Source: Orbicella franksi (lineage: Eukaryota). From it: a DNA stretch of 64,000 bases. Shown here in pieces: positions 1,717-28,599 of the stretch. The first letter of the stretch is position 1, and every line of letters begins with the position of its first letter. The notes below the pieces were generated by a model, which did not search any database, was not told the origin of the DNA, and saw only the letters and a list, made by a program, of their open reading frames with translations. The translations under genes and the position numbers were made by a program. Location of the stretch: positions 5,952,001 through 6,016,000 of the forward strand of contig OZ116709.1 of assembly GCA_964199315.1 (NCBI GenBank), in the 5' to 3' direction.

Positions 1717-3057
1717 CTACCAAAGGGGCGCTAAAGGATGGAAGATCAACTCGGGGAACTGTCTGTGTGTAGAATCAGGAAAATAAAAGTTCACTCCTGC
1801 ACAATTCACTTGATCTTTCTTTCCAATGCACTGCGGCAAATCCAACTCGGCGGGTGAGAACATGGTGATAAAATATTTTGCACTCTTTCTGACGAGAATA
1901 GGCTCAGTGAAATACACATCAAAGCCAGGTAAACCTTCGGTTCCTCCAAACTCCACTGTATAGCTACCTTGCACGCAACTCACACAGCTGCGATTGCTGT
2001 CTAGCAGTTTCGTTATGACTGCATAGTTGTCGTTGAGCTTCTGGCCGCTCAAAATGATCCGCACTCCGCTAATACACACCGGTTGATCAGCTATGAAGCA
2101 AACGCTGTTGGTGCTTTCGTATGGAACAAATAGGCGAGGTGGTTCATTTACGGACAAGCGGCGACAGCGAAGAGGCTTGATCCCTTGCCGCGCCGGATGA
2201 CGAGCCTTATTTAGCCGAAGGGGAGAATGATCGTGATCTAACTGCGCGAGAACGAAATCAGAAGCGGAGAGCCCTTGTGTAAATTGGGAATCTTCGAATG
2301 TAAGAATCCCAGATGCCAAACTGTGATTGAGCAAATCACTGTCTTTTATAAGCGAGAAACGAATGTGAGCCATTACTCCCCCAAGAAACTTTCTGATATT
2401 CTTAGCGATCGGTTCCAGCGAGTGCGCTTTACATTGTGCTCCAGCCCAGGAAATGACTGCACGGTATAATTCGCGCTCGTCAATGTCTAAGGTCTCTCGC
2501 TTCACTAGAGCTTCCAAGATCTTTCCAGACGTGGAAAGAAAGCTTTTGGAACGAAGGCATTGCCGGGTCTGGAGATCAACGATGTTCCAACATCTCTCTT
2601 GCAGTTGGTCGGTGTCACCGAACAACTCACATTGTTTCAAAATGTCCAAAGCGTTATTGGCGTCGATTTCGTTGCTCAAGAACTCGGCACATTCGTCCAG
2701 CAAGCCAGGTATCATGTACTTTTCAGCCAAATACATTACACGGAGAACGCATTCAGCCGTTAAATGGGTTTCGTCCGAATACAAGAAGCGAAAAAGTTCC
2801 AACAGACTGTTGGAGTCTGCATCCACAAGCTCAACAGAGTCACTTTTCTCTGACAAATCTCCGTAGAACATTTTGTAGAACACAGGGCTTCCAATGGCCA
2901 GCACGTACTTGTGAGCTGGGATTGACATCTTTCTCTCCGTTTCGCTCTCTCTTACGATGAAATTTATATCGCTCATAAGCGAATTATTGTACATTCGTTT
3001 GTTGCGTTCCCTCAGACTGAGCGACAGAGTTTTGAAATCAGACGGTAAATCGTGCAT
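1717..3057 (-). CDS. BTB/POZ-BACK-PHR protein (BTBD1/2/3/6-like), single coding exon
   Basis: BTB motif SDINFIV...IPAHKYVLAIGSPVFYKMFYG...LFRFLYSD. BACK region LYRAVISWAGAQC...HIRFSLI. Degenerate PHR-like C-terminus VCFIADQPVCISGV...FTEPILV...FPELIF. The ORF-track start at 3126 is GTG. The first in-frame ATG is at 3057, and an upstream exon cannot be excluded. Confidence 0.85.
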   Translation of the reverse strand: MHDLPSDFKTLSLSLRERNKRMYNNSLMSDINFIVRESETERKMSIPAHKYVLAIGSPVFYKMFYGDLSEKSDSVELVDADSNSLLELFRFLYSDETHLTAECVLRVMYLAEKYMIPGLLDECAEFLSNEIDANNALDILKQCELFGDTDQLQERCWNIVDLQTRQCLRSKSFLSTSGKILEALVKRETLDIDERELYRAVISWAGAQCKAHSLEPIAKNIRKFLGGVMAHIRFSLIKDSDLLNHSLASGILTFEDSQFTQGLSASDFVLAQLDHDHSPLRLNKARHPARQGIKPLRCRRLSVNEPPRLFVPYESTNSVCFIADQPVCISGVRIILSGQKLNDNYAVITKLLDSNRSCVSCVQGSYTVEFGGTEGLPGFDVYFTEPILVRKSAKYFITMFSPAELDLPQCIGKKDQVNCAGVNFYFPDSTHRQFPELIFHPLAPLW

Positions 3058-4905
3058 ATTGGACGGTAGAAAATTTCCTTTGACAGTGTCCGCTAAATGA
3101 AGAAATGCTTTACTACCGTTTTCCACGTTAATGCCAAAAGATTTCCTTCTCCAGTTCTTGAGACGGTTAACAATCTTTATAGAAACAGCTAGAACTCTCT
3201 TTTGTCTTTGTTATGGAGGTGTCCATTTCGTCACGCACGAACATGCCACCCAACATGTCATCATCCAAACACTGATTTAATTAAAGATTTCCGGTCTCAA
3301 ATACGTGGCGAAAAAAACCTTTTGATTTTAATAACCTTTCCGAGTTTCGTTTCCCTCGTTGTGTCTTTTTTTAAAGGTTGAAATCTTTAGCAAACGTGGT
3401 GTTTACTCGTAAAAAAATTTACTTGTCACGGTACAAGTGAGCCAATAAAACACTCGTAATCAATTACTGATGCTTGCGTGTTCCGCGGATTATCTGGCTC
3501 TTTATATGACCTAATCACAACAGACCTTCTAGCTTGGTCTTGAAAAAAGGCGCTTCATTTTAAAGGTATAAAAAGTTAAACGACTTCTTTACGGAAATAT
3601 GATGCAAGTGTTGGCTTTGTGAATTGAAAGCCATTTGCTTTGATATGTTTATGTAATTTGTGACGTCACATTCGCTAACAAAGAATTTTGTGTACATTTT
3701 GCAACCTGCACTGTGCAATACAATTGGAAAAGAAAAATCAACTTGACTTGGAAATTTGTCTATGATCGAGACTCGCGAAGGTTTTAGGCCGTTCGAAATT
3801 GCCTGAAAAATTATCAAATGCAACAAATCTTTAAAATTTGATGGATCATTGCTACACGCACGGAAGCCCTTTACAAGTGTGACTTCATTTGTTGAAACGA
3901 ACTGTCGATTTGGTCACGACATAAATAGAGGACTGGGTTCAATTTCCGCCGCTCCACCCCGGAACTTGCTCCTTTCTAAAACAGCAGCTCAATAAAAAGA
4001 AAACGTACTCTGTCCAGATTCTGATCCCTGAAACTTCAGCACGAAACAGAGAAAGTGTCTATAGCTAGTGACGAGACGTCAGGGGTGCGATACGATTCAA
4101 GAACGGGACGTGTACAATTCACTGGGTTCACATCGAACATAAACCTCAAAAGTGATACTTTGTTAATACAAAAGCATTCCAAAGGGTCCAGATTGTATAT
4201 GATTTGGACGGACATTGTCAGCAAAAAATGTTCTCAAGACGGTTTATATCCATAAGTTACCCTGATGGGTCTCGCTGTCTCGCATGCAGGGTATTCATAA
4301 GAAGTCCTGTTAAAATCAGTCGAGCGAAAAGCGCACCCACCTATATTGGATTAGGACACAAAACCAGAACAACGTTTCCTCGCGTGCAATTCAAAATGAA
4401 CAATTTCCTGTCAAGCGGAGTATTAAAAGTGACGTATACATCATACACACAGAGAACCCCGTCCGACTGTACACTCACGATAGGCACATTTCTATCAAGG
4501 GAGGGTGTGCGTACGTTCAGTTTGCATGTAAAACGTGCCCATCAGGAAACGAGGAGTGTTCTATCACTCAATGTTCTAGCCTCCTAATTAGGAGTCTGTA
4601 CGGCAACTAGTTTAACGTGCGCAGGAAAAGTCTTCAGTATCACCCTAGAAAGCCCTGTAAGACCCAGTGAAAAATACGTGTGCGAGTACGAGTCTGAATG
4701 GTAACTGACCGTTGTCACGCTAAATATCACGTCGTTCGTAAACTCACTCGCACGCCAGAGGGAAAAGCCAGATAGGAGCGCTTGAGCGCGAGACTCAGAC
4801 ACTAGAGCCCGCTCGCACGCTAACACGCAACATTCTTAACTGGTAAACCTTCGTCATGCAATAAATTGATTCATTAGTGAAAGAGAACCCTTATTTCTGA
4901 TTTTA

Positions 4906-6619: not shown

Positions 6620-9600
6620 TTAGCATTTCGAGAAACCTAATTGATCAGAATGAGATCGTCGCCAGAGCCGTGGATTTGCATTGTTTGTGTTTTCCCTCGC
6701 CGAGTCGTCCACGAATATAGGATTGTGTACAACTGCAGCATGTTTCCTCAACACTTCCTCAACCGGTTCATACATGGGGTTATCTCGCGCAATGGCTACG
6801 GCATCGCCTGAAAGTCTTATTTCAGTTTCTGTGGACGTGTTGTCGCCATCAGATTTGGTATCACCGTCTCGTTCGGGTTCAGCGATAAACGCAGGATTTT
6901 CAAAGTTGAACTTACTTCGTTGCATCATTTCTCGAAACGGCGAGCTCACCTCAGGCTTGCTTCGTCTATTGTGGTATTCAATCCGCGCATTTTTCGATCT
7001 GTATTTTCTTCGTTTTCTTCTCCTCCACACGATAATCAGGACGATGATGATAACAACTAGCAATACGATACAGCCGATCATCGAGTAGAGTCCCGCGGGA
7101 CTAATTCCCGTACGGTTCCCGCTTCTGCTGCCATCCTCAGTCACAGCAGCGGCTTTATCGCAAGTCTTTCCAAAGTAATTCGGTGGACACACACATGAAA
7201 AGTCTTTCTCTCTTAAGGGATAGCACGTCCCCCCTTGAAGACAGGGATCGGGTTCACAGTTCCTCCAATCCAGTTCACAGTTTACTCCAGTCCGCGGATA
7301 TTTACACGGCGTGCAATTCTGCCCGCCATAGCCTGGCGCACACCCTGAGCAGTTTCCGCCCCACGGTTCCTCACACCGGCACGAGAACTTCGTAGGATCT
7401 TCGGCATACGAAATGCACGTGCCGTTGCGAGGACAGATCGTCGGGTTTTCCCGACAGATTGTATCGTCCGTGTCGCAATTAACCCCAATATACGGATCTT
7501 TACACAGGCAAATGAAACCGTTTACTTTGTCGACGCATGTGCCGCCGTTAAGACAGCTGGCCGATTTACAGTCGTCAATGTTCGCGTCACAGAGCCTACC
7601 ACTGAAGCCCGGCTTACAATTGCATTTAAAATCGTTGACGAGATCTTCGCAGTACTCTGTTCCGTTCATGTTACAAGGACTGGGTCGACATTCATTGATT
7701 TCCACATTGCAGTCGGGAGGGGACCATCCTGGTCTACAGTTACAAGAGTAATTTTTCCAGCCACCAAAACCATCTTGACATCCATCGATTGAGTTACCCG
7801 GATGGCATGGATCGGGGTCACAGTAGTTGATGTCACTACAGCGAAAGCCGTCACCAGTAAAACCGAGTTTGCACGAACACGAGGCTCGTCCCGGACCCGC
7901 TCGAGAGCAGATCGCGTATGGACTACAAAAGCTCTTATTCATAGAACATACATCTACTTCCGCTACTGTGATGGTCAAAATATTGCTCGTACTCAGTCCT
8001 CCGCGGTCAGTTGCACGTACTCTGAGGAGGTATTGATCACGTGACCACGCATTTAGCTGACTTGCCACCACAAGGTTTTGTCCGCTGACCTGGAAGTCTA
8101 CCATGATTTCGTTTTGCTCTCCTTCGACTGTAATATTGAATGAGGTATCGTACACATCTTGATCTTCCACAATAAATCTCCCGAGGATGTATCCAATAGG
8201 GGAACTTTCCAAAACGTCCACTTTCGTCTTTCCGTCGAGCGTAACACTGCTCGGCGGTTCGTTCACATCGGTGATCGCGACGTCAAACGTTTTAACGAAT
8301 TTTAAGTCTGTCAATACTTCGCGCGTTGTCAGTTGTACCGTGATGAGTGGCGTGGCTTCGTGATCGAGCGGAATTCGTGAAACGACGATAAGATTTCCGA
8401 CCAGACGAAACGGTACACCTCGTGACGTTAACTCGAAGGAGTAACCAGTCCGCGTGAAGTCTGCATCGATGATAATAAAGCTTGTAACGACTGCTCCATT
8501 ACTTGCATTTTCTGGAATTGTCAACGAAGAAAAGATGACATCCGTCGGCGCTTCAGGCACGTCTAAGACAAAAACAAGCAAAGAACTAATAGTGGACATT
8601 TTGGGAACGCCATCATCGGTGCATTTCACATACAGCGTGTAGTTCGCCCTTGTTTCGTAATCAAGCCTCTCACGAACTAATAGAGAGTTGGTTCCAGGCT
8701 GAATCATAAACTCCGTCGGCACCGAGTTCACATCGCTTGAACGTTTTCTCCGCGAGTTCGATGGCGTGTGCACGTCGACCGTGACGAGAAGTTTAGCTTT
8801 GGCCTCGCTAATGAGTTCGCACGCATGCGTCTGGGGCCGCACGGGATTGTTGGCGTTATCTTCGTCGATGACCCACAAATAAGCTACAATGGTGATTCCG
8901 ACATCAGCTGTTTCATTTACAGTCGCGACAGCCTGGGTCACAAGCTTAACGTCCGACGCGTTAACCGGGGGATTCGGACTCAAGATTGTGTCCCCTGGGG
9001 AGTCTGTGAAGATCACGTTCGATGGAGGATCATTCGCATCTAAAACTCGAATTACAAAATCTCTTTCGTAAGACAAGCCACCGCTGTCGCTACACAGAAG
9101 CGTGATGTTATGCGTGGAGTGTTTCTCGTAATCTACAGGCAATCCGTTGCCAGTTAAAAACAGCTCAATGAGCGACACGTTTATCCTGACTCCAAATCTC
9201 CCAGAGCCGTCGTTTAGAAGTCGACAGTGAAACCACTGGGAGAAAGTATCGGGATCTTGTACTGTAACGAGTCCCACGACTGTTTCGATGGGTGAGTTCT
9301 CTTTAACACTTGCTGGAGCCAGCTGAATGCCGTACGGAGGCTCATTTACGTCGAGAATGGGCAGCGACAAAGTCACAACCTTGGAGAGCCACGAGTGCAC
9401 ACCATCATCTGTAGTCGTTACAGTGATGTTTACATGACGGTGTAGTTCATAGCTGAGAGCGGTGCTGTCCGCCACATACAGCTTGTTCGTGTCTCCAAGA
9501 GAGACAACGCCGCTTGGAGTTTGAGCTTGGATAACGTAGGTGTGTGTCTGTCCGCTGTCCTCGTCCAGTGAGGTCAGTTCTCCAATCAGTGAGCCAACCT

Positions 9601-12600
9601 AAAAAGAGATACGTACCAGTAGTTCAGTTAGCTAACGGAGCGATTACGTCATCTTTTATCTATCTCTCTTACTGTAGAACAAGTAATAGAAAACAGTCCA
9701 GTTTCAAATATAAAGACTGCAGACGCATCTGCACAATACAAGTCATACTATGTCGTAACAAATTCACCCTTATTGTCACAGTCCACTCTGTGGAGTACAA
9801 ATAACTCGCGAAAAGGGTACAAATATCCCATGATATTTCAGTCTGAAAGACAGGTTTAAAAGTTTTTTATAGTTGTTGTCATTCTAATCCTTTGCTGCGC
9901 GAGAACGAAAAGTACAAGTCAGCTAAAACGTTGGTTAACCTGAAAAGTAAGTCGCTATTAGCAGATCCGAGTTACTATCTCTTTGCCTAACCCCAAAACT
10001 AAATCACCAGAGCTCGTTATTTGACCCAAAGGCAAATACTACATTGTTGCTTCACTACAATGTTGATTAACCTCAGATGAATGTCTGATCAACTGACGCC
10101 AAAACTAGATTACTGATACAGGTATAGTGTGTAGAAAGTAATCAGGCAATTATTTTGATTTTGGTTTTACTTTGGTTTGAGATTGACTGAGTAGTCTTAA
10201 TGGTAAGTAATTGGTTTGGTTTTGGTTTTACGACTCTCAATTGAAAACCGCTCTATTAGGATCTGAATGTGGTTTATCTGACAGCTAAGAAAGGACTTGG
10301 TGCTAGTGCTGAGCTAACACACTTCGTTACGTTATCAATAACACTAGACCTACCCGCTCACCTTAGTATTTTCAGGAATAGCTGTCCCTTGTGGTAACAC
10401 TATTCCTGTCGGCGCGTCATTGACATTGAGTACACTGACCACCACCCTTTGCGTCAACATTTGGTTACCGCTATCAGTCGTGGTAATGTTTATAAGGTAA
10501 ACGTTTTGCTCTTCGTAATTCAACCTCACAAGAGCTTCCAATCGGTTGCCTACAATGTTAAACACCGTGTCCGGTGATACGCTGTAGGAATGGTTTTGCC
10601 ACTTGTCCTGATCAGCAGTGCGCAGGATAGCAACCAGCGATCCTGGACTCAAATTCTCGGCGATCTAAAGAACAAGACAAAATAATCAAGAATTCAGTTC
10701 TCCTTACAGTGACAACATCTTGTTACAAGAATAAAGGGAGAAAACGTTTGCGTCAGACCAGTGGCCCACCCAGGCGAAGCTTTCTACTCCTCCCTAGATG
10801 GGATGTTAGTTCATCGCAGGATTACGTCCCACCCCAACTGAAGTATTAAATTCGCCGGTATCCATTTATACACCTGGATGGAGAGGGGCACTATGAGAAG
10901 ACCCCGGCTAGGGCTCGAAGCAGGAACGCTCGGTCCGGAAAACAGCGCGCCTCCAAGACTAAAGAAAATCATCAGTTAAAGGACATTTTGTATTGACTTA
11001 CCACTAAATTCTTAGAACTAAGATTTTAATAAAAGTATGTTGATCAGTAATAAGAATTACTATTTTGATTATGGAAATTTGTGTTAATGATAACAGTAAA
11101 ACCTAGTGGCCTCTAATTACTAATCCGCGGCGAGATGACACTGCAACATGAAGCCGGACGTCGAAGCTAGATAACGAAATTTAAAATTTTAAAAGGGAAT
11201 TTCTGAGTAGACGTTTAACCCTTAGATTTCTTTAAACTAAAAGTGTGCCTGGCTGACAATAAATGAGCAGCCGTATAAAGACCGTACGAGACCACGAAAC
11301 TTTTATAATCGTTGGACAGCAAATGCCAAACATTGAGACAACCTGGTAACAAAAATCAAGCAATCTTCGCTATCACCCATCCCAGTAGACCACGATATCT
11401 GTCGTTTGTTACCAATTACGATTGTTAGAGTACAATTTTATACCAAAAACAGAGGCGAGGAAATGAAGCACCATGAAGTACCTCGAATTTTCCCGACGAT
11501 GACTCTATCCTGATCGGCGGCTCATCAACGTCTGTCAACTTTACAACAAACTGCTGTTGAGTTGCTTCGCCATCCTGATCCTGACATTCAATGTCTACCA
11601 AATGATCTGGACCATCCGGGTCTTCAAAGTTTAACATCCGGGAAGCCAACACTGTCAGTGCCAAACCGCTGACCTTGAACCTGCCGCCAGCGTCGTTACG
11701 CAATCCACAAGTGATGCTTTGCGGGACGAACGCTTCATCCGGGTCAGTGACATTTATGATCCCCACCACAGTCCCAGTGGGTGAATTTTCTGCTATCACG
11801 TGGTTACTGAGTACAATCGAAGTGGGGGCCTCGTTTACATTTGTGACGTAAATGGTGAAGCTCTGATTGACAGTGAGGGAGTGGTTAGCATCCTTGATCT
11901 GTACTGTGATGTGGTGAACCTGAGCTATTTCGTAGTCTAGCGGCCGTCGAGTCATCAACTTCCATGTGTAAGAGATGCTCGTTGGACGAAGCTGAAGAAA
12001 ACAGACAGCTTCAGTATTGACACGCTACCGTAATAACAGCTACAATGTCGGTGACTTTAAAAAAGAAAAATTAGGACTATCCCCTCCTCTAGTTCAAAGA
12101 TGGAAAAAAATAGCGCGTTTTGATTTAAAAGCGAATCCTCTCTTGATTTTGAGCCGCGAGAGGGGAATGTCATTTCTGTTTTCATTCCGGACAAGACCGT
12201 AGATCTATCACTGACCAATTCCTACTGAATAACATTCTCAAAAATATTGCCAACTTCTGCGATGCCGTTGCTTCTGTTTTGCAACAAGACCGGGTGCAAA
12301 ACCTGCAAAAATCTGAACAGCCTTCAAATGAATAGCCTTCACATGTCAAATCGGGCCTACTTTTGAACTAATTCAGTATTTACATTTACCTCAAAAACTG
12401 ACCCAGGGTCACTTAGGATCTCAATAGAGAGGGGGCTTAGCTGAGGGTCTTTGAGAGTGATCACACCAACCAGTGTACCAGCCAGGTTCTCGGCCACGTG
12501 GTTATGATGAAGTACCAAATGTTCCGGTGGTTCATACACGTCAATCACCTACAAAGATAAAATTGAAGGGTTTACTCACTGGAAAGCGATTTTGAGGATT

Positions 12601-15600
12601 GGAGGCAGAATTGTCAGAATCAATATTGGAGAATATTTCTTACTTGGATGCGAAACACCTCAAAATTCGTTGCCCCTCCACTTCCATAAACACGGATGAC
12701 CACATTGTACTCATTCTCCTCCTCGTAATCCAGCGGCCGCGTTGTCACCAAGTCTGGTGAATTTACAGCGTTTCCGCTAGCCAAAGCAAAAGTTCCGTTG
12801 GCATCATCATCCAACTGGAAAACAAGAGTATCATTCGGATCAGATGTCCTGGCCGTGACATGCCCTATGACACTGCCTGCGGGCTCGTTTTCTTTCACAT
12901 CTGTGGAATCCAACGAGATGTTCATCTTCGCTGACAGAAGGTTGCTCCTCACTTCAATATACAGGGTCGTTGGGAAGCTTATACGCTTGCCGTCACTACA
13001 GAACACGTGGATAGGATGACGAGACGACGTTGCGTTCGTCAGCGGTTTCTCAACAAAGAGCTGAAGCCCAGAGACTCTGAACAAGCTTTCAGGATCCAAG
13101 AGGTAACAGACATGCGAGTCACTCGGGTCTTCATCCACAACAATAAACGACCCCACTAGACTCCCCACGGAAGCATTAGAACTGACAACCTGATGCGACA
13201 AGCTCACGGCGCTCGGAGCATCATTGGCGTCCAGGACGCTGATGTTAAAGCTCTTCGCGATAATAAGTCCTCCTTTATCCCGGCACCTAATCTCTACACT
13301 GATCACACGCGAGCTGTCCAGCGCTTCGAAGTTAATATCCCCGTTGACAAGAACAGCGCCGTTTTCAATGTTAAAGACATCATCGTTCACCACATCACAG
13401 ATTCCGGGATCATTATGATCAGGGTCCGCCATTGTTATATCTCCTACGCGGTAACCAATACGTTCATTCTCTTCCACGCATATCCCGGATGAAGATCCGC
13501 AGGGTTTCTCTGGGTGAAGGATAATATCCGTTGGGGCTTCATTCTTGTCGAGCACTGTGATGTTTAAAGCCTGTTCAAATGAAAGTCCAGCGCTGTCAGT
13601 TGTTCTCAAGACAATTGGTAAAGGATTTTTTATTGTCGTTTCGAAATCAACGTCGGCGAAAATTTTTAGTGTTCTCCCTTCGACCGAGAAGACGCCGCTG
13701 GGATTGGAAACTAGAGCAAACGTGTGGTTATCATGGAGGTCTGGATCCCGAGCGCTCAGCGAACCAACAACGGTACCCAGCGGTGCATGCTCAAGAAAGG
13801 CATCCGCAGACAACAAAATACCGCTTGGATTTTCATTCAGATCAAGCAGGCGAATCTCAACCGATGACGTCACGCTCTCACCAAAAGGATCAGTAGAACG
13901 CACTTTTAACGTCCAAAGATCACGTGACTCGAAGTTCAACCGCTCCGCCCAGGCAACCACTAGGGACGATTTGTTAATAAAGACTACTTCACTGCCTCCT
14001 ACAATGGAATAAACGTGTGACTGTCCGAGGTCTTCGTCCACTGTTGAAAAGTTCCCTATCACGGAACCGTTCTGGGTTCCCGCCGGGGTATGTTCTGAGA
14101 ACTCGGGGATTACACCCCCGCTAAATAGAAGCCCCGTTGGGGGATCATTACAGTCCATAACTGTGATATTGAAGACTGATATACTGGACAGCCTCGGAGA
14201 ACCGTCATCTTTAGCTTCGACTGTCAAACGGAAGCTTGACGTTTCCTCGTAGTTCAGTTTGGAATGAAGCGTCAACTCGCCGCCAACGAGTCGAAATCTG
14301 TCGCCAGCATCTGTGAGCGAAGAATAGATGATTTCTTGTCCGGAGTCAACATCTGAAGAATTAACAATGCCGATGACAGTTCCAAGAGAGGCGTTCTCGT
14401 AAATCACCGACGAGGATATTGTAGGTGGACCTGCCAGAAAAACAAACAAAACAAAAAGAAATTAAACAAATTGCATGGTCTGGTCAAAACAGTTTTCTTC
14501 GGTAGGAAAAAGCACCATTTATACACCGGGGAGAGTAGCTCTGTGAGAGTAAAGTGTCTCGCTCAAGAATACGACGCGAAGGCCCCGGACAGAGTTTTAA
14601 TTTAAACCGCTTCAACTAGAATTCAACATGACCACCATTAGGCTATTGATACTCCTATGCTAACTTACTTGGTGGTTCATTGACATCTGTGACGTGGACA
14701 GTCAGGTTCTGTTTGATGGACAGTTGTGGCACACCACTGTCTATAGACATGAGACACACCGTGTACACTGACTGTCTCTCGTAGTCCACTGCACCAGCCA
14801 GGACCAACGTGCTGGCATTATTGTCCACATCAAACACACCAGCGCCGTCAATCACCGAATAAGTAAAGAACTGCTCTTCATCATTGTCGACCGTGGTCAG
14901 TCTTCCTATTACAGTGTCAGGAGGTGAGTTTTCAGGAACAAAAGGCGAAGACAGTAAGATTCCGAGAGGCGGACTGTTGGAGCCTGGGAGCTGACTTGCG
15001 CACTGGGCTTTGATGACACTCCACCGACCGGAGGCTTGACACGTGATGACGCTTGAACCAATCAGAAATCCTTTGGTACAAGACAGCGTGCAAGCCTTAC
15101 CATAACTGAAAACAGAACAAAACGGCTTCAGAAACGTTTCACTAAAACATATTCGGTGTCAAAATATGGCAAAGAGTGTCGCAATAGTAAATACCAAAGT
15201 CATCACACTGGTCAATTACAAAGGACACGGTCAAAAATCCCGGGTCAAAAACTCGAAGCAAATACACCTACAGTAGTTGACATGAAGCGCGGGAAAAGGC
15301 ATGTACGCGAGTCATGACTGGTTTTAGTTTTACCTCTGACTGGATGGCAAAGTAGTCCGCGAGATTTTAAGCCAATCGTGTAGTATAGAATGCGAAACCA
15401 AAGCAAATGTGAATTATTTTCGACACTCAATTGAAAACCGCTCTAAAGGCTAACCTAGTAAGTTCTCGAATGACACTATAGTCTCTACCTAACCGGAGTG
15501 CTATTCGCTTCTTGATTGACGTACTCTTCTCTATCTAACCAAGACACTTTTCTTTTAAAATACAGTCGAACCTCCACTAACAGCCTTCTCTCTACAACGG

Positions 15601-18600
15601 GCACCTCTCTACAACGGCTACCTTTTGGTCCCGACGGACGGTCCATACATTCACTATTATTTTAACCCTCTACAACGGCTACTTTCTTCTGCCCCCAAGT
15701 AGGCCGTTGTGAAGAGGTTCGACTGTAACCTAAGATGCTACTGCCAGTCATTCCAATAGCTATACCTGCCTACATGGTGTAAGTTGTCATCGACTGTCTC
15801 TCTAGAATTGATATCTAACCTGTACTGAACTGCAGTGCCGTCACACTTCACCACAATTCCCGGAATTCCGTCAGGTTTCCCACAATCCATCACGTCACAT
15901 GTGCGCCCGTCATCTGATAAAGTATGACCAGCGTCACAGCTGCACACGTAAGAACCAATAGTGTTGACGCAACGATGCTGGCAGGAGTGATTTGATTGGC
16001 TACATTCATCAATATCTGCACACGTCAATTGATCACTGCTCAGAAGGAAGCCTGGGTTGCAGTCACAGTGGAAGCTTCCTCTGGTGTTGACGCAGAGCTG
16101 CTGGCAGGAGTGTTGGCTGGTTAAACACTCATTGATGTCATCACAAGTCTTGTTTACTGGATTGTAAGCGAGTCCCGAGGAGCACAGACATTTGTAAGAA
16201 CCTGCAATGTTCTCACATTGATCTGAAACAGGAAATAGGAAATAGTTCAACTTCCACATGGTGGTTGAATCTAACATATAAGTCTGAGGAGAAAACCCCA
16301 GTGTCTGACCTTTCAAGTGAAAGCTATTGGGCAATACTTTTATGTGGTACTGTTAATTATGATGTACAAGGTGGTTCCAACTTTCACATCTGTGACCAAT
16401 AAAATGAAAGCTTTTTAGCGGTACTTTCACGTTACACTGTTATGTATGATGTAAAAGGTGGTTCTAATTGAGTTTAAACTCTACCTTTAACTTAAGTTAA
16501 ATTAGTTACATCAGAAAAATGACGACTCATGCCATTAAGCTAATTGGCTAAAACTTCAAAAGGTACCAACTGAAGATACATGTAACCCCCGCAATGTCAT
16601 GTTAGATTTGAACATAGTACACAGAACCAAGCTTTATATTTAAACGACACAAATGTAATGACAATCACATGGTCACTTTCATATTGGGTCACCTCCCTCA
16701 GGTGTCAATGATGACGATTGAGACTTTATCATTCCAATGTCTTTACCTGGGCACTGGTGGGTGAGTGTCTGGCATTCATCTATGTCCTCACAGCTGTGTT
16801 TATCAGCTGCCAGCATGTATCCAACGCGGCATGAACAGTAGTATGAGGACTCTGTATTGTTGCAGCTAAACTCACAGCCTCCATGATTAATGCGACACTC
16901 ATCAGCATCTGAAATAAAAAAAACATGGGATCCTTAAGTTTGTCACTTCGTCCATAAAAGAGACTATTGCTCCAACTAGCATTCTTAGCTCTCTCTATTC
17001 AGTTGATACTAAAATGGGCCACAGGGTGACTGTTACATGAGCGACTAAGAGCTACTAAGGTGGAGTACATGTTTCTGGAAAAAAAAAAAATTTTAGTAGC
17101 AGTCATCATCATCATCAATTCCAGTTACCCAACTGGAAAATAATTAAAATTTCATACACCTTGCCCAATTTATCTTCTTTTTTGGGGGGGGGGGATGGGG
17201 GGGGGGTTATGTTAAACTGTCATGCTCTCTCAGCAACTCTATGCTACTTTTATGTACTCTTATACAATTTTGAACCACCCAAATTTTTTGTAAGAGTAGA
17301 ATCATTGGCAATTTCATCTCTTGTCTTCATCAGGACTGGGCAAAATTGCACTGAGGTGCATACACATACACATGTACCTTGGCAAGATTTCTTGTCACTT
17401 TGTAAAGTGTAGCCCTGCAAACAGCTGCAGTTGTAGCCACCAGGAAAATTGATACACAGTTGCGCACAGTCTCCACGACTGTAGCTGCATTCATTTATGT
17501 CTGAAAGCATTAACAAATAATCAATGGTTAACATACATATATTTGTCTCATTCATCAAGTACATATTTATAACAATTTATGACTCGCAACACTTCTTATT
17601 AATAATAACTGTATAAATTAATATCTGACCTTGACATGTCTTATCATCAGATGCAAGTTCAAATCCCAAGGGACAAAGACACTTATATCCACCAATCAGA
17701 TCTAGGCATGTATGACTGCATCCTCCATTTTCTACCTGACATTCATTAAAGTCTGCAAAAGATCACAAAAATGTCTTAAGCTATTAATTTATTAGGGATG
17801 ACATGACAATGACATACCAGCCCAACATGGCCCAACACCCTCTTCTTTACAGACTCAAACTGGGACAAATGATTGAATTTTAATGACAAACAGCTATCAA
17901 ACAAAACTGTGGCATTCAATATCAATTTTTCAGTCAACAGTGAAATACATGCCATGGATGCACACTCACCTAATTTTCTTCTAGTGATTCTTATCATCCT
18001 AATATTCTAACATGTCATGAATGTTTCAAGACATTTATTATTTTATTAATCTGTTTATTTCTGCAATCAGTTCCAGAAAATATCAATACCCACCCCAGGG
18101 AAGCTTATTGGAAGTTCCAAAGAAGGGAGAGGGGTGTCTCACAAGCCAAGATTTTCAAAGGAAAGTACGAAACAGTCTGGAATTTTCAGAGGGATGGGTT
18201 TCAAACCAAAAAAAAAAATCTGTGGGAGGGGTACATGTATGAATATTTTCTGGAACAACTCAAAAGGTGATTAATTACACATTCAAGATCTAACTGAGTC
18301 ACAGATTTAAAGTATAACAGCTCAGCTAGTGCCTGTTGACTGGCAACTCATAATTTACCTGCTCCTGGCTGCCGATCAGGATGATACACATGCAGCGCCG
18401 TAGGTCTTGTCATACCACCAGTTATGCTGACCCTGTCATCACCATCATCCTTGTTACAGTGCTCAATGCTATGCCGCTGCCAATCACTCCAGTACAGCCT
18501 GCTGCCAAATTGGGTCAATGCATAGGGATGATATACCCGGGTGCGATCAATCAAAACGCTACGATTCTGACCATCCAAGGATGATTTTTCAATCTTATCT

Positions 18601-19990
18601 GTATTAGCATCTGCCCAGTACAGCATCTTGTCAACATAGTCTAATGCAAGCCCATTTGGCCAAACAATACCTGCATTTACAAGCACCTCTTTCTGTGTCC
18701 CATCACTCATTTTTGCTCTTAATATCTTTGGTTCACTTCCCCAGTCTGTCCAATACACTTTATCATTCGCTGGATCAACAACAATAGCTCTTGGCTTGTC
18801 ATGCCCACTGCTAATTAATGCCTGACGCTGTGTGCCATCTAGATTAATAACCTCAATAATTTTCTTATTAGCATCTGTCCAAAACAGCTTTCGACCAGTC
18901 CAGTCAACTGCCAAGTCTTCAGGGATTCCCAAGTCTTCCACTATAAAATCCTCAATTTTCCCAGAATCCAGGCCATTATTGATATGCACCCTCTGAATTT
19001 TTTTCACACCAATGTCTGACCAATAGATCATCTGTGTTTTAAGGTCAAAATCCAGACCAACAACATTCGTCAAGCCACGCACAACATAGTTATATCCAGT
19101 GCCATCAAGATTCACTTGACGAATGTCCACGGTGTTACCAAAGATGATAAAAGGTTCTGAGCTGAGAGACTGTGACAATCCGACTAAACAAATTAAAACT
19201 GAAAGAAAAAGTCACAATTATATGAACTATCATAATGTTAGAGTACAAGTAAGCCTGAGTTAAATTCTTTGAGCCATGATCATTGTCTACATGTATTAGT
19301 GAATAGGAAATGATGAAAGAACCTTTCAGATTCATAGATTCCCAATAGAATACCTGTGGCTGAGTGGCTACTAATACATGTTAGACATAAATTCAATTCC
19401 AAATGCAATCATCTATCTGTACTGTATTATCCATATACTGACTAAGGTGAGTGATTCTCATTAGATAGTTATTTACAGTGCAATCCTGATTTTTCTATAA
19501 CCTCCAAGGGAAATGAAGATTGGTTTGAGAATCAGGTAGTTCGAGAAATCAGAGGTAAAATTCCAGTGCTGAGAGGAGGGCCTGATGACTTTTGGTTCGA
19601 GTTATTACTAATTAATTGGGAGGTTCAAAAGATTCCGGGTTTGAGAAAGCGGGATTCCACTGTATAATGAAACAACCCAATCATGCATGATGTCATTTTG
19701 CAACATAATACTCTTTGCCTTCCCACAGTGACTTTTTTTTGAAAGGAATGTCACAAAAAAGTGGCTTATTTGATAGAAATGTTAAACAAATTCTCTATTT
19801 GAAAGTATTATGAAATTCTCTCATAATACAAATTAATATTACCAGGTTTGGACTAAAAGGGTTAAAGATGTAAAATTTTATGCACCGCTCTCTATTTAAG
19901 CTGGGTAAATATTTTTTTTTACTCACCAAAACAAACTGTAGACAATCCAATTAGCAACCTCCAAACTTGAACGTGGTACAAGATCATCAT
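6620..19990 (-). CDS. 2583-aa type I receptor: signal peptide, YWTD propeller, 5 cbEGF, Sushi, about 15 cadherin repeats, about 6 EGF, TM, NPx[Y/F] tail
   Basis: Coding exons 19990-19927, 19183-18359, 17500-17378, 16908-16747, 16222-15820, 15105-14669, 14430-12644, 12548-12390, 11991-11482, 10664-10362 and 9598-6620. All are GT-AG and phase-consistent, totalling 7752 nt. Signal [27 protein letters not shown]. Propeller motifs YWSD/FWTD/YWTD/YWAD/YWSD. Cadherin motifs DxNExP, DxD and [28 protein letters not shown] followed by RRRKRRK. Confidence 0.9.
10753..10954 (-). mobile_element. SINE family A, degraded copy (another fragment at about 14505-14635)
   Basis: Reverse-complement similarity to 22119-22400. 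Confidence 0.65.
15563..15725. mobile_element. Tc1/mariner-type MITE (TA|CAGTCGAACCTC...GAGGTTCGACTG|TA)
   Basis: 12-bp TIRs with TA flanks. Related TACAGT-ended elements lie near 19475-19645 and 57120-57390. Confidence 0.75.
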
Positions 19991-21822: not shown

Positions 21823-22754
21823 ATGATCAACATCGATGTCTACTCTGACCTGTCCTGTCCGTGGTGCTATGTTGGAAAGGCACGTCTTGACAAAGCCATT
21901 CAGAAGTTCACAGATGCCAGCATCACTGTCAATTGGCATCCATACATCATTGACAAAAATATCGCTCCGCTGGGTGAAGATTATATGGCATACAACACAA
22001 GGAGGTAAAATCAGGATATCTACTAACTGACAGACTGGTGGTCAGGCAGTTAGAAAGACAGATCTGATAGAGTCTGATAGATGTAGAATTACAGCAAGGT
22101 ACATCTCCGCCATCTTGTGGAGGCATGGTGGCCTCATGGTTAGTGCCCTAGTCTTCGGATCAAGCGGTCCGGATTTGAGCCCTGGCCAGGGTCATTGTGT
22201 TGTGTTCTTGGGCAAGACACTTTTCTTACAGTGCCTCTCTCCACCCAGGTGTACAAATGTTACCTACGAATTAATTGCTGGGGGTAACCCTGTGATAGAC
22301 TAGCATCCCATCCAGGGAGGAGTAGAAATACTCCTAGTCGCTTCATGCTACGGAAAGCGGGAAAACCTCCAGCCTGATGGACCACTTGGCTGGTATACTT
22401 AACCTACCTACATTTCTGCCAACTCTCCTAGACTATACAGGAGTCTCTTGGATACAGCCCAAATCTCCCAGCCTCCCATACACGCCACCAAATCTCCTAC
22501 TATATGAAGTTAAGTGCTTAAACTACATTTTTTACTCTTATTTTGAATCATTTTAATGGTAGAATTGGTGGAACCCTAGTTTTAACATGATTTGATGGTG
22601 GTTGATGAGGTACATGTAAAATTAGTGATCTCCCAGATTTAGCTTACTTGGCATCTCAGATATAGGAAGATTAAAAGATAGGCAAGTAGGCAATAATTTG
22701 CTTATTTGATCCATTTATGAATTGATAAATTGATCAACTGATTGATTGATCAAC

Positions 22755-22785
<31 letters not shown>

Positions 22786-22900
22786 CTGATTGATTGATTG
22801 ATTGATTGACTGCTTGCATATGTGATGGGCCGATGAGGAATTGTCTGATAGGCTGCTTGCTTGCTGGCTTGAATAATATTATTGATTGATTGACTGTCTC

Positions 22901-22941
<41 letters not shown>

Positions 22942-23058
22942 CTGCTTGCATATGTGATGGGCCAATGGTGAATTGTCTGAAAGGCTGCTTGCTTGCTGGC
23001 TTGAATAATATTATTGATTGATTGACTGACTCATTGATTGATTGATTGATTGATCGAT

Positions 23059-23089
<31 letters not shown>

Positions 23090-23764
23090 CTGCTTGCATA
23101 TGTGATGGGCCAATGATGAATTGTCTGATAGGCTGCTTGCTTGCTGGCTTGAATAATATTATTGATTGATTGACTGACTCATTGATTGATTGATTGATTG
23201 ATTGATTGCTTGCTTGATTGGCTGATTCCTTGGCTGATTGATTGCTTGCTTGCTTGACTGACAGACTGACTGACTGACTGATTCATTGACTGACTGACTG
23301 ATTGCTTTTTAAGGTGGGGAGGTGATGGCTGGACAAGATCACTAAGACAGGCAGGACAACAAGATGGATTGGAATTCAAGAACTGGAAGACATGGCCTAA
23401 CTCTTTACATGGCCACCGACTCATTCATCTAGCTGGGATTCAGAAAGGCCCTGAAGGACAAGCAAAAGCTAAGGACCTTTTGTTTCATATGATTTATGAA
23501 GATGGCAAAAATGTCAGTGATGTAGACACTTTAATTGAAGCTGCAAAGGAACTGGGCTTGGAAGGTGGCAAGAATTATCTCAAGGCATCTCATGATGTGG
23601 ATTTGGTTTTATCTGAAGATTCTCGTGCAAAATCTCACATGAAGATATCTGGTGTGCCATATTTTGTTATATCTGGTGACGATAAACAAAAGAAGGCTGT
23701 GTCTTTGTCAGGTGCTCAGGGCACAGAACGGTTTTTAGCAGCATTTAGTCATGTTGTTCAGTAG
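21823..23764 (+). CDS. FrnE-like DsbA-family thioredoxin-fold oxidoreductase, about 210 aa
   Basis: Exons 21823-22004 and 23314-23764 joined in phase 2 (AG|G). Motifs IDVYSDLSCPWCYVGK, VNWHPY, WPNSLHGHRL and ISGVPYFVI (cis-Pro loop). No signal peptide is evident. A short upstream coding exon (MATSE, near 21320) is possible. Confidence 0.9.
22119..22400 (+). mobile_element. tRNA-derived SINE family A, near full-length copy
   Basis: A-box/B-box-like head (TGGCCTCATGGTTAG...TTTGAGCCC) and shared body CTTGGGCAAGACAC...CATCCCATCCAGGG...CTAGTCGCTTCATGCTAC, which recurs elsewhere in the window. Confidence 0.8.
22715..23305. repeat. Compound satellite: (ATTG)n/(GACT)n arrays with three copies of an embedded roughly 70-bp unique module
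   Basis: The module TGCTTGCATATGTGATGGGCC...GGCTTGAATAATATT starts at 22811, 22943 and 23091. Confidence 0.9.
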
Positions 23765-24798: not shown

Positions 24799-26421
24799 TC
24801 ATTGGAGAGGAGCAACCTTGTTAGTTTTAAATCGAAACCATTTGCGAGCCTCCCTCGCCTTCTTCTGTCCGTTGTCTTCACTCTCCATCGTTAGTTGATC
24901 AACATCTTCAAGTGAGTTTGTTGAAGTGTTCCAGGATGAAGCAGAGCATGACCTTGCTCTCGCACCACGTTGCACGTTCTTCCCACTTTTCGGCGTGCAG
25001 GGTTTCTGGAAGTCTTCATCCAAAGTTGTGGAACTTTGCCATGGTTCTTCTTCACTGTGGGGACTATCCCGTGAATTGGTTAAAGAAGCGCCAGCTGTCG
25101 CGCCCAACTTCCCGTTTTTCTCGCTATGCGAGATTGATTTAAACTCAGTGAAGGGCCAGGAACAAGCAACTTTTGGTTGCTCAAACTCTTCTTCAGGGGA
25201 TTTAAGTACCCTGAAGGGCCAGGAACAAGTAACCTTTGGTTCCTCGAATTCTTCGTCCATGGTTGTGGAACGGTCCCATGAGTTGGTGGAGGGAGAACTA
25301 GTTGTAGCGCTTGCCTGCCCATTTCCCTCACTTTCCGTAGTTGATTTGATCTCTCTGTGAGGTCTTCCAACATTTGGTTCCTTGAATTCTTCTTCCAAGG
25401 TTGTGGAACTGTCCCATGAGTTGGCAGAAGGTGTTGTATTTGCGCCATTTGTCTCATTTTTAGTCTTTTCTGAAGTCGAATTGACCCGATTACAGGGACG
25501 GCCAGTACTTGCTTTCTGAAAACCTTGGTTCGACTTGGAGAAACTCTCCCACAACGCAACGACGCGGGATCTCGTTTTCACGCTCTTCCTAAGCTTGTTC
25601 GTTACGCTCGCGGAGGCCTTTTGAACCTCTCTGAAGTCACGGCCAGTTCTTTGTTGTTGAAGATCTTCATCTGAATTGATGGGACTGTTCCACGAGGTCT
25701 CGGTAGAAGGGCTTGTGCTCGCAGAACTGAAGCTACTAGAGCAGTTATCCGAGCTGCTGTCACGGCAGTCTTCAACTGCCACGCCAAAAATTTGCGCAAT
25801 GGTTTCGTCGGTTGGCAGAGCCGCGTGTCCGCTGTCTGGGTCCCGTGCCGCTGCCTTCTTGATTGCATTTTTAATCTTCTTTATGATTCGTATTTTATTG
25901 GCGCGCGCCTCCTCCTCTTGGCTGTGGATGTGTTTCGTCCTCGGACGGCGCCGTGGTTTTCTCTTCAGCTTTTCCTCGGCAAGCTGTTCCCTTTGCTCGA
26001 GTTTCTTGGAACACACCTGTTTCCATCTCGAAGAGCGCGGTGGCGGCAGTGAAATGTGGGGCTTGCCATTGAGTCCGGATGGACCAGGCTCGCTCTCCGC
26101 GCTGTTTCTCGCTTTACCTGTACCGTTCTCACTCTCTTCTTCTTCTGACGGAAATGACGATGTATCTGAGGAGATCTCATCGTCGGCCTCGAAGCCAAGA
26201 ACTTCAGCGCTGGAAGATACCACCGAGGCACTCTCAGTGTCTTCTCTCAGATCTATTAACTCAGATTCCCACGAATCTGCGTTTGAAGGACGGTTCATGT
26301 GGATTTCAACCTTGGGTGTCCCCCCACTTTCTCCGCTTCCATCTTTTCTCTTGACTTTGTCAAATTTCCCGACTTTCTCGACTCTACTAACTGAACAAAT
26401 CAGCGAATTACAGCTCCCCAT
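24799..26421 (-). CDS. Single-exon 540-aa orphan; Ser/Glu/Lys-rich, predicted disordered, MGSCNS N-terminus, internal repeats
   Basis: True ATG at 26421 and TGA at 24799-24801. A 1.6-kb open frame in an AT-rich genome. No domain recognised. Confidence 0.75.
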   Translation of the reverse strand: MGSCNSLICSVSRVEKVGKFDKVKRKDGSGESGGTPKVEIHMNRPSNADSWESELIDLREDTESASVVSSSAEVLGFEADDEISSDTSSFPSEEEESENGTGKARNSAESEPGPSGLNGKPHISLPPPRSSRWKQVCSKKLEQREQLAEEKLKRKPRRRPRTKHIHSQEEEARANKIRIIKKIKNAIKKAAARDPDSGHAALPTDETIAQIFGVAVEDCRDSSSDNCSSSFSSASTSPSTETSWNSPINSDEDLQQQRTGRDFREVQKASASVTNKLRKSVKTRSRVVALWESFSKSNQGFQKASTGRPCNRVNSTSEKTKNETNGANTTPSANSWDSSTTLEEEFKEPNVGRPHREIKSTTESEGNGQASATTSSPSTNSWDRSTTMDEEFEEPKVTCSWPFRVLKSPEEEFEQPKVACSWPFTEFKSISHSEKNGKLGATAGASLTNSRDSPHSEEEPWQSSTTLDEDFQKPCTPKSGKNVQRGARARSCSASSWNTSTNSLEDVDQLTMESEDNGQKKAREARKWFRFKTNKVAPLQ

Positions 26422-28599
26422 GATTAAGCGAATCTTCTCTCAGCGAAAAAAATTCTCAATGCTGTCTTGATTGTGACGCAAATGTTATTAGCGATTGACG
26501 TGTCCTGATAAACTGCAAGTGCGCGCGCAAAATAAGGCGAGTATCCTTACTTTCAATACTGGCATTTTTTTCTCTTTAACTCTTCCTCGCATGCAGTCTT
26601 TTTAATAGAATGACAGATGTAAGTATTTTTTTAGAAAAAAAAAAGATTACAGCATTTTACTAAGTCTTTATTTCCTGTTTCTAGTTGTATTCAAATGATG
26701 TCTTTCAATCAGTTCTTCGGCGCAAAATCATGTAAGCGAGACTTGTGCGGGTTTCATGTACCTTGGGTACTGCGCGAGGTCCTGGGTACTGCTCCCGAGT
26801 TTTGGACGGCCAGCAAAATTTTTTCACAAACTTCCTGAAATAAAATACCTCATCTTAAGGTACTGTTTATTTATAAATTCAGATGTCGAAACGGTTCTAA
26901 CAATGTTTTAGGCTTTTCTGTTGGGCGTGGACATTTAGTCGCCGACAGAAGGGCACTTTGTCACCGGAAGAAATTTGGTTCTCTAATTAGAAGAATTCTA
27001 CTTGTATACTAATGCAATTGCCACAATCTGATTGGCTGAGCCATCGTAGACTATGCATGTGGCTTGAGCCTGTCTACAAAATGACGTTTTTTGTTTGTCT
27101 AAAGATTCGGAAGAAGATTCAGAGATATCATTTGGTAATTTAATTCCGCGGAGACTACAAAAAGGACATTCACTGTTCTGCGATAATAAAATTTTAAAAT
27201 TTTTGAATGACTTGATGATCGTGTACACAGCTGCATGTTTCAAATTGCAATTTAGCTAAAATTTCGCTAAAACATGAATACTGCTTACATTGCGGAGAAA
27301 TAAGGAAATTTATTAAGAATTCTACTTAAACAATTACTTTACCTTGGCCCCATCACCTATCACCTCAGTGATCAAGAGCAGATCATCTAGTTGTTCAGTA
27401 GTGACGTTTTCACTTGTGTCGGAAAATGATTGGTGCTACACCCGTGTCATCTTTTCATCCAATCGTGACGCATAGTTTTCCTGCGCCTTGCGTCAGCTAC
27501 GTGTATTGGAGTGGTTCATTGTTTTGCATGTGTCCTTTGTGATTGGCTAGAGTGATTTCTTCGGTTTAGGTTTCACGACACTCAATTTGAAGACAGCTCT
27601 CAAAGCCCATGGGCTTATACTTAGCGGCAGGAGCGCAGTGACCATATACGCACGTGCGCACCTCCGGAAATCTCGAAAAAATAACTTTTATAAATTTGCT
27701 TGCAAAGATTGTCTTTAATAAGTTAAGTCGGTCGGTTGACAGTCTAGTCTCTCATATTAAACCTGCTAACAATTATCTCAAAGGCTGAAATATAACCAAC
27801 GCAAGTTACCAAATGTTCAACGCTTTTTCATGTTGTGAGTTATGAAACTCCTGTTCCCTGGAAAACGAGGGAAATGGCATTTGCGAGCCAGTAAATATAG
27901 AAATTTCTCTTCGGTGCGTACTCCACGAAAAATGTTCGCTGCCCCCCTAGGGAGGGCTTTACTTTGGAGGCTAGTTTGGCTATGCGGTTGGGTATATTTT
28001 CCAAGAGGGGTGTGCGGTTATTACTGGAATTTTACAGTAATATGATATCCTTACTTACTCGCTCCCTTAATCCTCTTCGTCCCCTGTGGGACTTAAGGCA
28101 ACAGCAACCCCCCTCCATTCATCCCTATGTTGTGCAACATGCAGTGCCTCGCCCCAAGTGAGTTTTACCACACTCGGCTCAGCCATGACAGTTCAGCGCC
28201 AGGTGGTTTTTTGGACTACATCATGCAAACTGTTCTGGCGTGTGTGTGCAATAATCAAGTTAGTTTATTTACCTTAAAGATTGATAACTTATGCAAGATA
28301 TGGCAGCGTGTATCATTACTGAAGAAAGAAAGATTTAAATCAAATGGAGCTAAAAATCAAGCAAGTCGTAGGATGGGTTAGATTTCCGTCTGGTTCAAGC
28401 CCTTTGTATACTAAAGTAAAAAGTAGCAATGTTTGTATTTGTTACAAAGAGGCGTTTTGGATGGACGTTCTGCGTTGGATTGTCTTGCAATAATAACTAC
28501 TTCTCGTATTGATTAGAGGGAATTCTGAAGCTCATTAATAATTCATCAAGTTTAAACAAAGGAAATCATGACCGTGACGGTGTTTGGATACCCGACCTT

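Follow-up and report, generated by a model that had tools for sequence, protein, structure and literature searches.

We analysed a stretch of 64,000 nucleotides (nt) from the coral Orbicella franksi (assembly GCA_964199315.1, contig OZ116709.1, forward-strand positions 5,952,001 to 6,016,000; hereafter the window, whose own coordinates are used throughout). The window is AT-rich (~40% GC), the RNA and DNA sequencing runs containing it derive from stony corals, and its minus strand carries a run of long open reading frames between 6620 and 19990, which an initial annotation, made from the letters alone, had joined into one phase-consistent gene for a receptor with an LDL-receptor-like head and a cadherin stalk. 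Here we provide evidence that this interval is a single expressed gene of 12 exons, with its ATG at 19990 and its stop codon at 6620–6622, encoding a type I membrane protein of 2,629 amino acids (aa). The joined coding sequence of 7,890 nt has no internal stop and specifies, in order, a signal peptide, a YWTD propeller, six calcium-binding EGF modules (cbEGFs), a Sushi domain, 15 extracellular cadherin repeats (ECs), approximately six to seven EGF-like modules, a transmembrane segment and a cytoplasmic tail. The exons, with the evidence for each, are:

19927–19990, minus strand: exon 1, start and first 21 signal-peptide codons, ending in phase 1 (RNA joint, translation, phase)
18359–19198, minus strand: exon 2, remaining signal peptide and six-bladed YWTD propeller (Ldl_recept_b, E = 2e-36; RNA joints)
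17630–17752, minus strand: exon 3, cbEGF1, starting DFNEC (EGF_CA/FXa_inhibition; RNA joints)
17378–17500, minus strand: exon 4, cbEGF2, starting DINEC and holding an RGD (Pfam; RNA joints)
16747–16908, minus strand: exon 5, cbEGF3 and the beginning of cbEGF4 (Pfam; RNA joints)
15820–16222, minus strand: exon 6, remaining cbEGF4, cbEGF5, cbEGF6 and the first third of the Sushi-like module (three EGF_CA matches; RNA)
14669–15105, minus strand: exon 7, remaining Sushi/CCP module and EC1 (Sushi and Cadherin in one frame; RNA)
12644–14430, minus strand: exon 8, EC2 to most of EC7 (Cadherin, E = 3e-42; acceptor from RNA, donor inferred and checked against the ortholog)
12390–12548, minus strand: exon 9, end of EC7 and first half of EC8 (GT/AG and frame; gap-free against Stylophora)
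11482–11991, minus strand: exon 10, second half of EC8, EC9 and the start of EC10 (Pfam, GT/AG and frame, Stylophora, EC profile)
10362–10664, minus strand: exon 11, most of EC10 and the start of EC11 (Pfam, GT/AG and frame, Stylophora, EC profile)
6620–9598, minus strand: exon 12, EC11–EC15, EGF-like region, transmembrane segment, tail and stop codon (Cadherin, EGF, EGF_3; EC profile)

The Pfam matches underlying these assignments fell, by open frame, as follows:

18351–19211, minus strand: Ldl_recept_b
four small frames, minus strand: EGF_CA/FXa_inhibition
14658–15158, minus strand: Sushi and Cadherin together
12623–14461, 11428–12024 and 10353–10664, minus strand: Cadherin
6623–9598, minus strand: Cadherin, then EGF, a hydrophobic segment and the tail

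Neither the gene's open frames nor the precomputed Pfam list of its ortholog contained a match to LDL-A (PF00057), Laminin_G or Cadherin_C, in agreement with the initial annotation, which had reported LDL-A repeats, laminin-G and a catenin-binding domain as missing. A HigB_toxin match in one EC exon lay under the cut-off and was set aside as chance, and an Rfam scan of the locus gave no match.

RNA read and contig mapping covered positions 14000–19990. A single 2,737-nt contig from the polyA RNA run X3 (record 6) extended from exon 1 into the first large cadherin exon through the joints 19927/19198, 18359/17752, 17630/17500, 17378/16908, 16747/16222, 15820/15105 and 14669/14430, each of which reads CT..AC on the plus strand, that is, GT..AG on the gene strand. 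Exon 1 joins exon 2 in phase 1, making the signal peptide whole. The two junctions that the initial annotation had singled out as decisive for a transcript joining propeller and cadherin exons, 15820/15105 and 14669/14430, are exact in this contig and are crossed by raw reads; the former, at the EGF/Sushi boundary, is also bridged by a contig from a second run, X1, and X23 raw reads spanned 15105/15820 (n = 2), 14428/14667 (n = 2) and 16908/17378 (n = 3). The five downstream junctions (exons 8–12) were placed by GT/AG sites and frame rather than by RNA, and were checked by ortholog alignment. The model aligned end to end with an independent NCBI model from Stylophora pistillata, XP_022800387.1 (2,633 aa); the alignment, 2,635 columns long with 9 gap positions, showed 77.8% identity and indicates that no exon is missing or misjoined.

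The propeller occupies aa ~37–300 (18363–19154), at the mature N-terminus and a few residues past the predicted signal peptide. As had been claimed, it is complete: residues 9–279 of the exon-2 translation span whole six-bladed propellers of LRP6 (its first propeller, P1), LRP4 and LRP2. Match scores were 225 bits for LRP6 P1, 223 for LRP4, 164 for LDLR and 144 for nidogen, and the coral propeller scored 325 bits against that of Oscarella versus ~225 against LRP6 P1. Each of the six cbEGFs that follow opens with D-x-[DN]-E-C, and the Pfam count in the ortholog slice is also six, which corrects the five counted initially. The RGD in cbEGF2 is private to this genome, with RGG or NGG in all relatives, and for this want of conservation it was ruled out as an integrin signal. 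The Sushi-like module (aa 551–608) has six invariant cysteines and an invariant tryptophan, scored 28 bits against Pfam Sushi (cut-off 20.7) and, when modelled alone with AlphaFold, reached a predicted local distance difference test score (pLDDT) of 89.8. The closest PDB folds of that model were all CCP/Sushi domains (MASP-1/2, PAPP-A, E-selectin SCR, CR2, CD55 and factor H; template modelling score 0.64–0.79), which bears out the Sushi assignment. An ESM Atlas search with the head and EC1–5 returned bacterial Ig/cadherin-like clusters only, with a best score of 0.76, below the useful range. One bacterial cluster there, mostly from Myxococcota, joins Cadherin_5, Big_9 and Ldl_recept_b; such bacterial combinations of propeller and cadherin-like domains apparently arose independently.

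A profile built from the clear repeats refined the initial estimate of about 15 cadherin repeats to exactly 15. Eleven of the 14 EC–EC linkers carry the canonical DxN[DE]xP motif, so that the protein falls within the cadherin superfamily, whose members have at least two tandem ECs with inter-repeat calcium motifs. The EC6–7 linker (12917–12949) is non-canonical and lacks the DxNDxP motif, and the EC7–8 and EC13–14 linkers are degenerate. Thus, the calcium-rigidified stalk proposed at first holds for most linkers; the stalk is probably mostly calcium-stiffened with at least one hinge, for which EC6–7 is the likely candidate. The best solved-structure match to the EC2–EC7 segment was CELSR1 (125 bits). 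An insert in EC13 contains a candidate furin-type site, and dibasic or polybasic residues occur at this position in corals, starfish, the crinoid and hemichordates. This site and the features from the EGF-like region to the tail are:

8741–8752, minus strand: polybasic RRKR followed by S, aa 1920–1923, in the EC13 insert (EC profile)
7148–7948, minus strand: EGF-like region, 40 Cys between aa 2180 and 2470, approximately six to seven modules (four EGF and one EGF_3 match in the ortholog slice)
7025–7096, minus strand: single transmembrane segment, aa 2472–2495, a hydrophobic run followed by RRRKRRK
6623–7024, minus strand: cytoplasmic tail of 134 aa, with no Pfam domain
6887–6904, minus strand: tail motif FENPAF
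6770–6784, minus strand: tail motif DNPMY
6713–6727, minus strand: tail motif HNPIF

These features match the membrane-proximal EGFs, membrane span and LDLR-style tail of the initial annotation. The number of cysteines in the EGF-like region is kept across the family described below. A [FYL]xNPx[FY] motif lies ~40–48 residues past the transmembrane segment in corals, both sponge lineages, Glandiceps and Lingula, trailed by one to three acidic NPxY/F motifs, and the first coral motif has an aromatic residue at −3 of N, typical of LDLR-type signals. Starfish tails are much longer, with an extra PPPYSPP and NPxF motifs further along.

To find relatives, we ran HMMER with the C-terminal exon as query against 1.84 billion representatives. 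Matches included proteins colinear over the ECs, EGFs, transmembrane segment and tail:

Oscarella lobularis (homoscleromorph sponge), XP_065830750.1: propeller directly after the signal peptide, cbEGFs, six-Cys Sushi, 15 ECs and ~40 Cys past EC15
Patiria miniata (starfish), XP_038054823.1: same design as Oscarella
Acanthaster planci (starfish), XP_022098055.1: same design as Oscarella
Anneissia japonica (crinoid), XP_033123556.1: same design as Oscarella
Dysidea avara (demosponge), XP_065892061.1: signal peptide, NIDO replacing the propeller, remaining design intact including the 15 ECs
Lingula anatina (brachiopod): signal peptide, then EGFs with no propeller; 11 ECs detected in the model
Glandiceps talaboti (hemichordate): partial model, truncated, beginning within an EC
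Saccoglossus kowalevskii (hemichordate): partial model

Every complete member has 15 ECs, a six-Cys Sushi and ~40 Cys past EC15. Stony corals share the full set of domains with a homoscleromorph sponge, with starfish and with a crinoid. The non-coral members are all auto-named 'protocadherin Fat 4(-like)', and the original Stylophora record, PFX19427.1, carries the name LRP1. The implication of the initial annotation that the architecture is unique therefore does not stand: entries with the same domain order from Stylophora, Oscarella, Patiria, Acanthaster and Anneissia were already in public databases under automatic names. Full-length identity between phyla is 33–41%, against 24–28% for the next-best cadherins (labelled Fat 4), and none of ~140 other top cadherin representatives has the propeller or the family tail. 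Among corals, 14 clusters matched the C-terminal exon at 68–92% identity and two more distant ones at 55–57%. Word-indexed searches of Nematostella, Hydra, Clytia, Rhopilema, molluscs, arthropods and vertebrates gave other families only, which is non-detection rather than proven loss. With its propeller head, 15 ECs, 78% end-to-end identity with Stylophora and 33–41% identity with the other phyla, the coral gene is an ortholog in an old cadherin-superfamily lineage and not a coral invention. We regard the gene, its transcript and its assignment to this family as close to certain. In a more distant relative, the orthologous locus (L002) has the same large cadherin exons, including a 618-aa exon that resembles the 613-aa open frame holding exon 8 in the window; an RVT_1 reverse-transcriptase open frame lies just downstream of the gene on that contig (16461–17723).

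The initial annotation had also placed the protein outside the LRP family and the classical, Fat, Dachsous, Celsr and hedgling cadherins, and comparison with known families upholds this (no LDL-A, 15 ECs, no Laminin_G, no catenin-binding domain, no seven-transmembrane region, a 134-aa tail). LRP6 (its first propeller–EGF unit, P1E1), LRP4, LRP2/megalin and LDLR share with it a six-bladed YWTD propeller followed by EGFs, a single transmembrane segment and a short tail with a PhixNPx[YF] motif of the FDNPVY type. Unlike them, the coral protein has no LDL-A repeats in any exon or in the ortholog's Pfam list, only one propeller, at the very N-terminus, and 15 cadherin repeats between head and membrane. 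Nidogen also combines NIDO, EGF and a YWTD propeller, and heads within the family carry either NIDO (Dysidea) or the propeller; however, nidogen is secreted, has no cadherin repeats, transmembrane segment or tail, and is the weaker propeller match. CELSR/Flamingo proteins resemble the coral protein in their EC array and EGF modules, but have HormR, GPS and 7TM regions, whereas the coral protein has one hydrophobic segment near its C-terminus and no 7tm, HormR or GPS match. Classical cadherins are set apart by the coral tail, which belongs to no Pfam family, and by the Sushi, six EGFs and propeller that precede EC1. Hedgling, lefftyrin and coherin are reportedly chimeric cadherins of early-branching animals, and there is precedent in proteins of the hedgling type for cadherin arrays with unrelated N-terminal modules that occur in sponges and cnidarians and were lost in many bilaterians. 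Hedgling itself opens with a Hedgehog signal domain and VWA ahead of its cadherin repeats. The mature coral protein opens instead with a YWTD propeller and gave no Pfam match to a Hedgehog N-domain, VWA, Ig, cohesin or phosphatase domain, and the propeller-headed family also persists in echinoderms. Judged by these comparisons, the family is a distinct lineage of the cadherin superfamily.

A separate propeller tree, as the initial annotation had proposed, placed all eight cadherin-linked propellers, among 73 in total, in one clade (support 98/83; 100% of bootstrap trees). Given this single clade, one fusion of head and stalk, predating the divergence of sponges and eumetazoans, is the most likely origin. 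The group of LRP6 P1 and LRP4 first propellers is one of four branches in an unresolved polytomy with the cadherin-linked clade. The nearest neighbours of that clade (support 93/77) are two propellers of P0308, a hypothetical protein of 3,532 aa from Oculina patagonica that has several YWTD propellers together with Sushi and HYR domains.

Classical strand-swap adhesion requires a free EC1 N-terminus. In the coral protein EC1 is capped by the Sushi, EGFs and propeller (~600 head residues), which makes classical N-terminal strand-swapping impossible, so that the ECs are most likely a long spacer and the head is the likely ligand-binding part; the count of 15 ECs, invariant in sponges, corals and echinoderms, further implies that stalk length matters. 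At the usual EC length of ~4.5 nm, an extended 15-EC stalk would hold the LRP-type head ~60–70 nm above the membrane. YWTD heads of this kind bind protein ligands in LRP4/5/6, LDLR and nidogen, and the head would bind a ligand in this family as well. The eumetazoan ectodomain would probably be cleaved at the EC13 polybasic site; LRP1 and FAT1 are cut by furin. In the tail, the PhixNPx[FY] motif, of the LDLR FDNPVY type, may recruit adaptors with phosphotyrosine-binding (PTB) domains (Dab, ARH, Numb) for clathrin uptake or signalling; the PTB domains of Dab, ARH and Numb bind the LDLR-type motif without phosphorylation. A distal capture head coupled to endocytosis, as hypothesized initially, is consistent with the conserved tail motif. 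Among the possible functions, a ligand receptor coupled to adaptors or endocytosis thus comes first, although this choice is tentative and falls short of an even chance. Taken as a whole, the reading of gene, family and mechanism together seems to us slightly more probable than not.

Several observations weigh against this interpretation. A role in adhesion or in anchoring to the matrix would account for these features about equally well, and integrin beta tails also have NPx[YF] pairs, which there bind talin and kindlin and not endocytic adaptors. The coral proximal motif ends in F and is not phosphorylatable, the aligned position in starfish does not carry the proximal motif, and no transmembrane segment could be detected in the crinoid model. 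Compared with LRP tails, the coral tail gave a best E of 0.036 (set of ~200 proteins), a motif-level likeness only, and homology to LRP tails is not claimed. The EC13 polybasic site is absent from Oscarella, Dysidea and Lingula in the family alignment, and a sponge site was dropped on this ground. The head is replaceable (NIDO in Dysidea, no propeller in Lingula), which suggests that the propeller ligand may not be the core function. Finally, the propeller tree was built without nidogen, LDLR, pro-EGF and SORL1 propellers.

A matrix or adhesion anchor is the strongest alternative, possible but in our view rather unlikely. The head would bind an extracellular matrix partner, the 15-EC stalk would serve as a spacer or tether or pair with partners laterally or antiparallel, and the NPx[YF] motifs would link to the cytoskeleton through FERM/PTB proteins in the manner of integrin beta. 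The nidogen propeller binds laminin, and NIDO and YWTD propellers occur together in nidogen; the NIDO in the propeller's place in Dysidea fits this picture, as do a stalk length invariant for more than 600 million years, suggesting a spacing function, the several NPx[YF] motifs with integrin-like spacing, and the nearest solved relatives of the stalk, CELSR1 and protocadherins, which act via EC–EC contacts. However, LRP6, LRP4 and LRP2 (223–225 bits for a single propeller) are closer matches to the propeller than nidogen is (144 bits), the N-terminus of EC1 is not free, and the first tail motif has the LDLR-type aromatic at −3; no one of these points is decisive. Third comes a morphogen co-receptor of the LRP5/6 or LRP4 kind, in which the propeller–EGF unit would bind Wnt, Dkk, an agrin-like or similar ligand and signal. 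The best single-propeller matches, LRP6 P1 and LRP4, speak for it, and the polytomy that their group shares with the cadherin-linked clade is compatible with a link, but the family has one propeller only, PPP[ST]P motifs are absent from coral and sponge tails, the propeller is absent or replaced in some members, and the cadherin-linked propellers form a clade of their own; we consider this reading improbable.

The database names themselves would make the protein a true Fat4 ortholog acting in planar polarity, or LRP1 in lipoprotein uptake. Fat, Fat4 and Fat-like proteins share a long EC array, EGF-like modules after it, a single transmembrane segment and the lack of a catenin-binding domain. 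However, true Fat/Fat4 proteins have ~34 ECs, Laminin_G between the EGFs and a conserved intracellular domain of 456–542 aa (PMC7430989), against 15 ECs, no Laminin_G and a 134-aa tail here, and they have no propeller, cbEGF and Sushi head; moreover, other cadherins labelled Fat 4 reach 24–28% identity, against 33–41% for family members in other phyla. Automatic NCBI 'Fat' labels in cnidarians include proteins with other domain compositions and short tails (PMC7430989). LRP1 is contradicted by the absence of LDL-A repeats. With nothing but the names in their favour, both labels are very improbable and already refuted on defining features. Least probable of all is that two adjacent genes, one for a secreted propeller/EGF protein and one for a cadherin, were merged by read-through or modelling: assembled contigs can in general bridge neighbouring genes, but the spliced EGF/Sushi joint is present in two RNA contigs and raw reads, the same colinear protein was independently predicted in three other phyla, and read-through is untenable because this joint splits one Sushi domain and keeps the frame.

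Beyond the coding sequence of the cadherin gene, the window contains:

1720–3210, minus strand: a 497-aa open frame with BTB/POZ (E = 2e-19) and BACK (1.5e-8), a neighbouring gene downstream on the same strand as the cadherin gene
15413–15447, in the intron between exons 6 and 7: ~35 nt with RNA word depth up to ~8,600, versus ~130 for the gene
22698–23304: an (ATTG)n microsatellite within a 132/148-bp tandem array of 2–3 copies
24802–26439, minus strand: a 546-aa open frame, overlapped by a 269-aa frame at 25661–26467 on the plus strand; AT skew is −0.22 there

At 15413–15447, reads and contigs diverge into many different sequences on both sides, with some joints switching strand. The segment occurs once in the window and gave no Rfam match; it resembles either a dispersed repeat or a short sequence common to many abundant transcripts. 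The (ATTG)n array accounts for long 'SINQSINQ' pseudo-open frames upstream of the gene. Neither of the overlapping 546-aa and 269-aa frames had a Pfam match.

The initial annotation knew of no named protein with this domain order, and we found no published name in the literature reached. None of the papers in that literature describes a YWTD-headed cadherin or cites any family accession; Nichols et al. 2012 and Hulpiau & van Roy 2011 lay outside its scope, and a prior description there is possible. The family's three accessions are absent from the ten cadherins that a 2023 genome-wide survey of echinoderm cadherins gives for Acanthaster, Patiria and Anneissia (PMC10734073). The protein that the survey names UECDH bears other accessions and is distinct from this family; it is reported to be missing from Patiria and Anneissia (PMC10734073). 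The architecture represents an ancient, apparently unnamed family that sits in databases under wrong names. The boldest reading, to which we give slightly less than an even chance, is that the family is a pan-metazoan lineage of cadherins that has so far escaped classification. A single fusion before the sponge/eumetazoan split would have joined an LRP-type head and tail to a 15-EC stalk of constant length; the lineage would have been kept in sponges, corals, echinoderms, hemichordates and brachiopods, is undetected in vertebrates, arthropods, nematodes, Nematostella and Hydra, and would serve as an endocytic or matrix receptor of long reach.

Accounts of how cadherins evolved usually centre on the classical, Fat, Dachsous, Celsr and protocadherin families and a few chimeric families such as hedgling. 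The propeller-headed family would add a lineage from the base of the animals that has a strikingly fixed stalk length and borrows both ends of an LDL-receptor-type protein. It has been masked by wrong labels ('Fat 4-like', 'LRP1') and was missed by the recent echinoderm survey. It offers a defined, testable case of ligand-binding and endocytic modules combined with adhesion modules in early animals, and Patiria embryos, Oscarella buds and coral cell atlases are tractable systems that carry it. To coral biology it contributes a candidate surface receptor that is widely conserved among reef builders.

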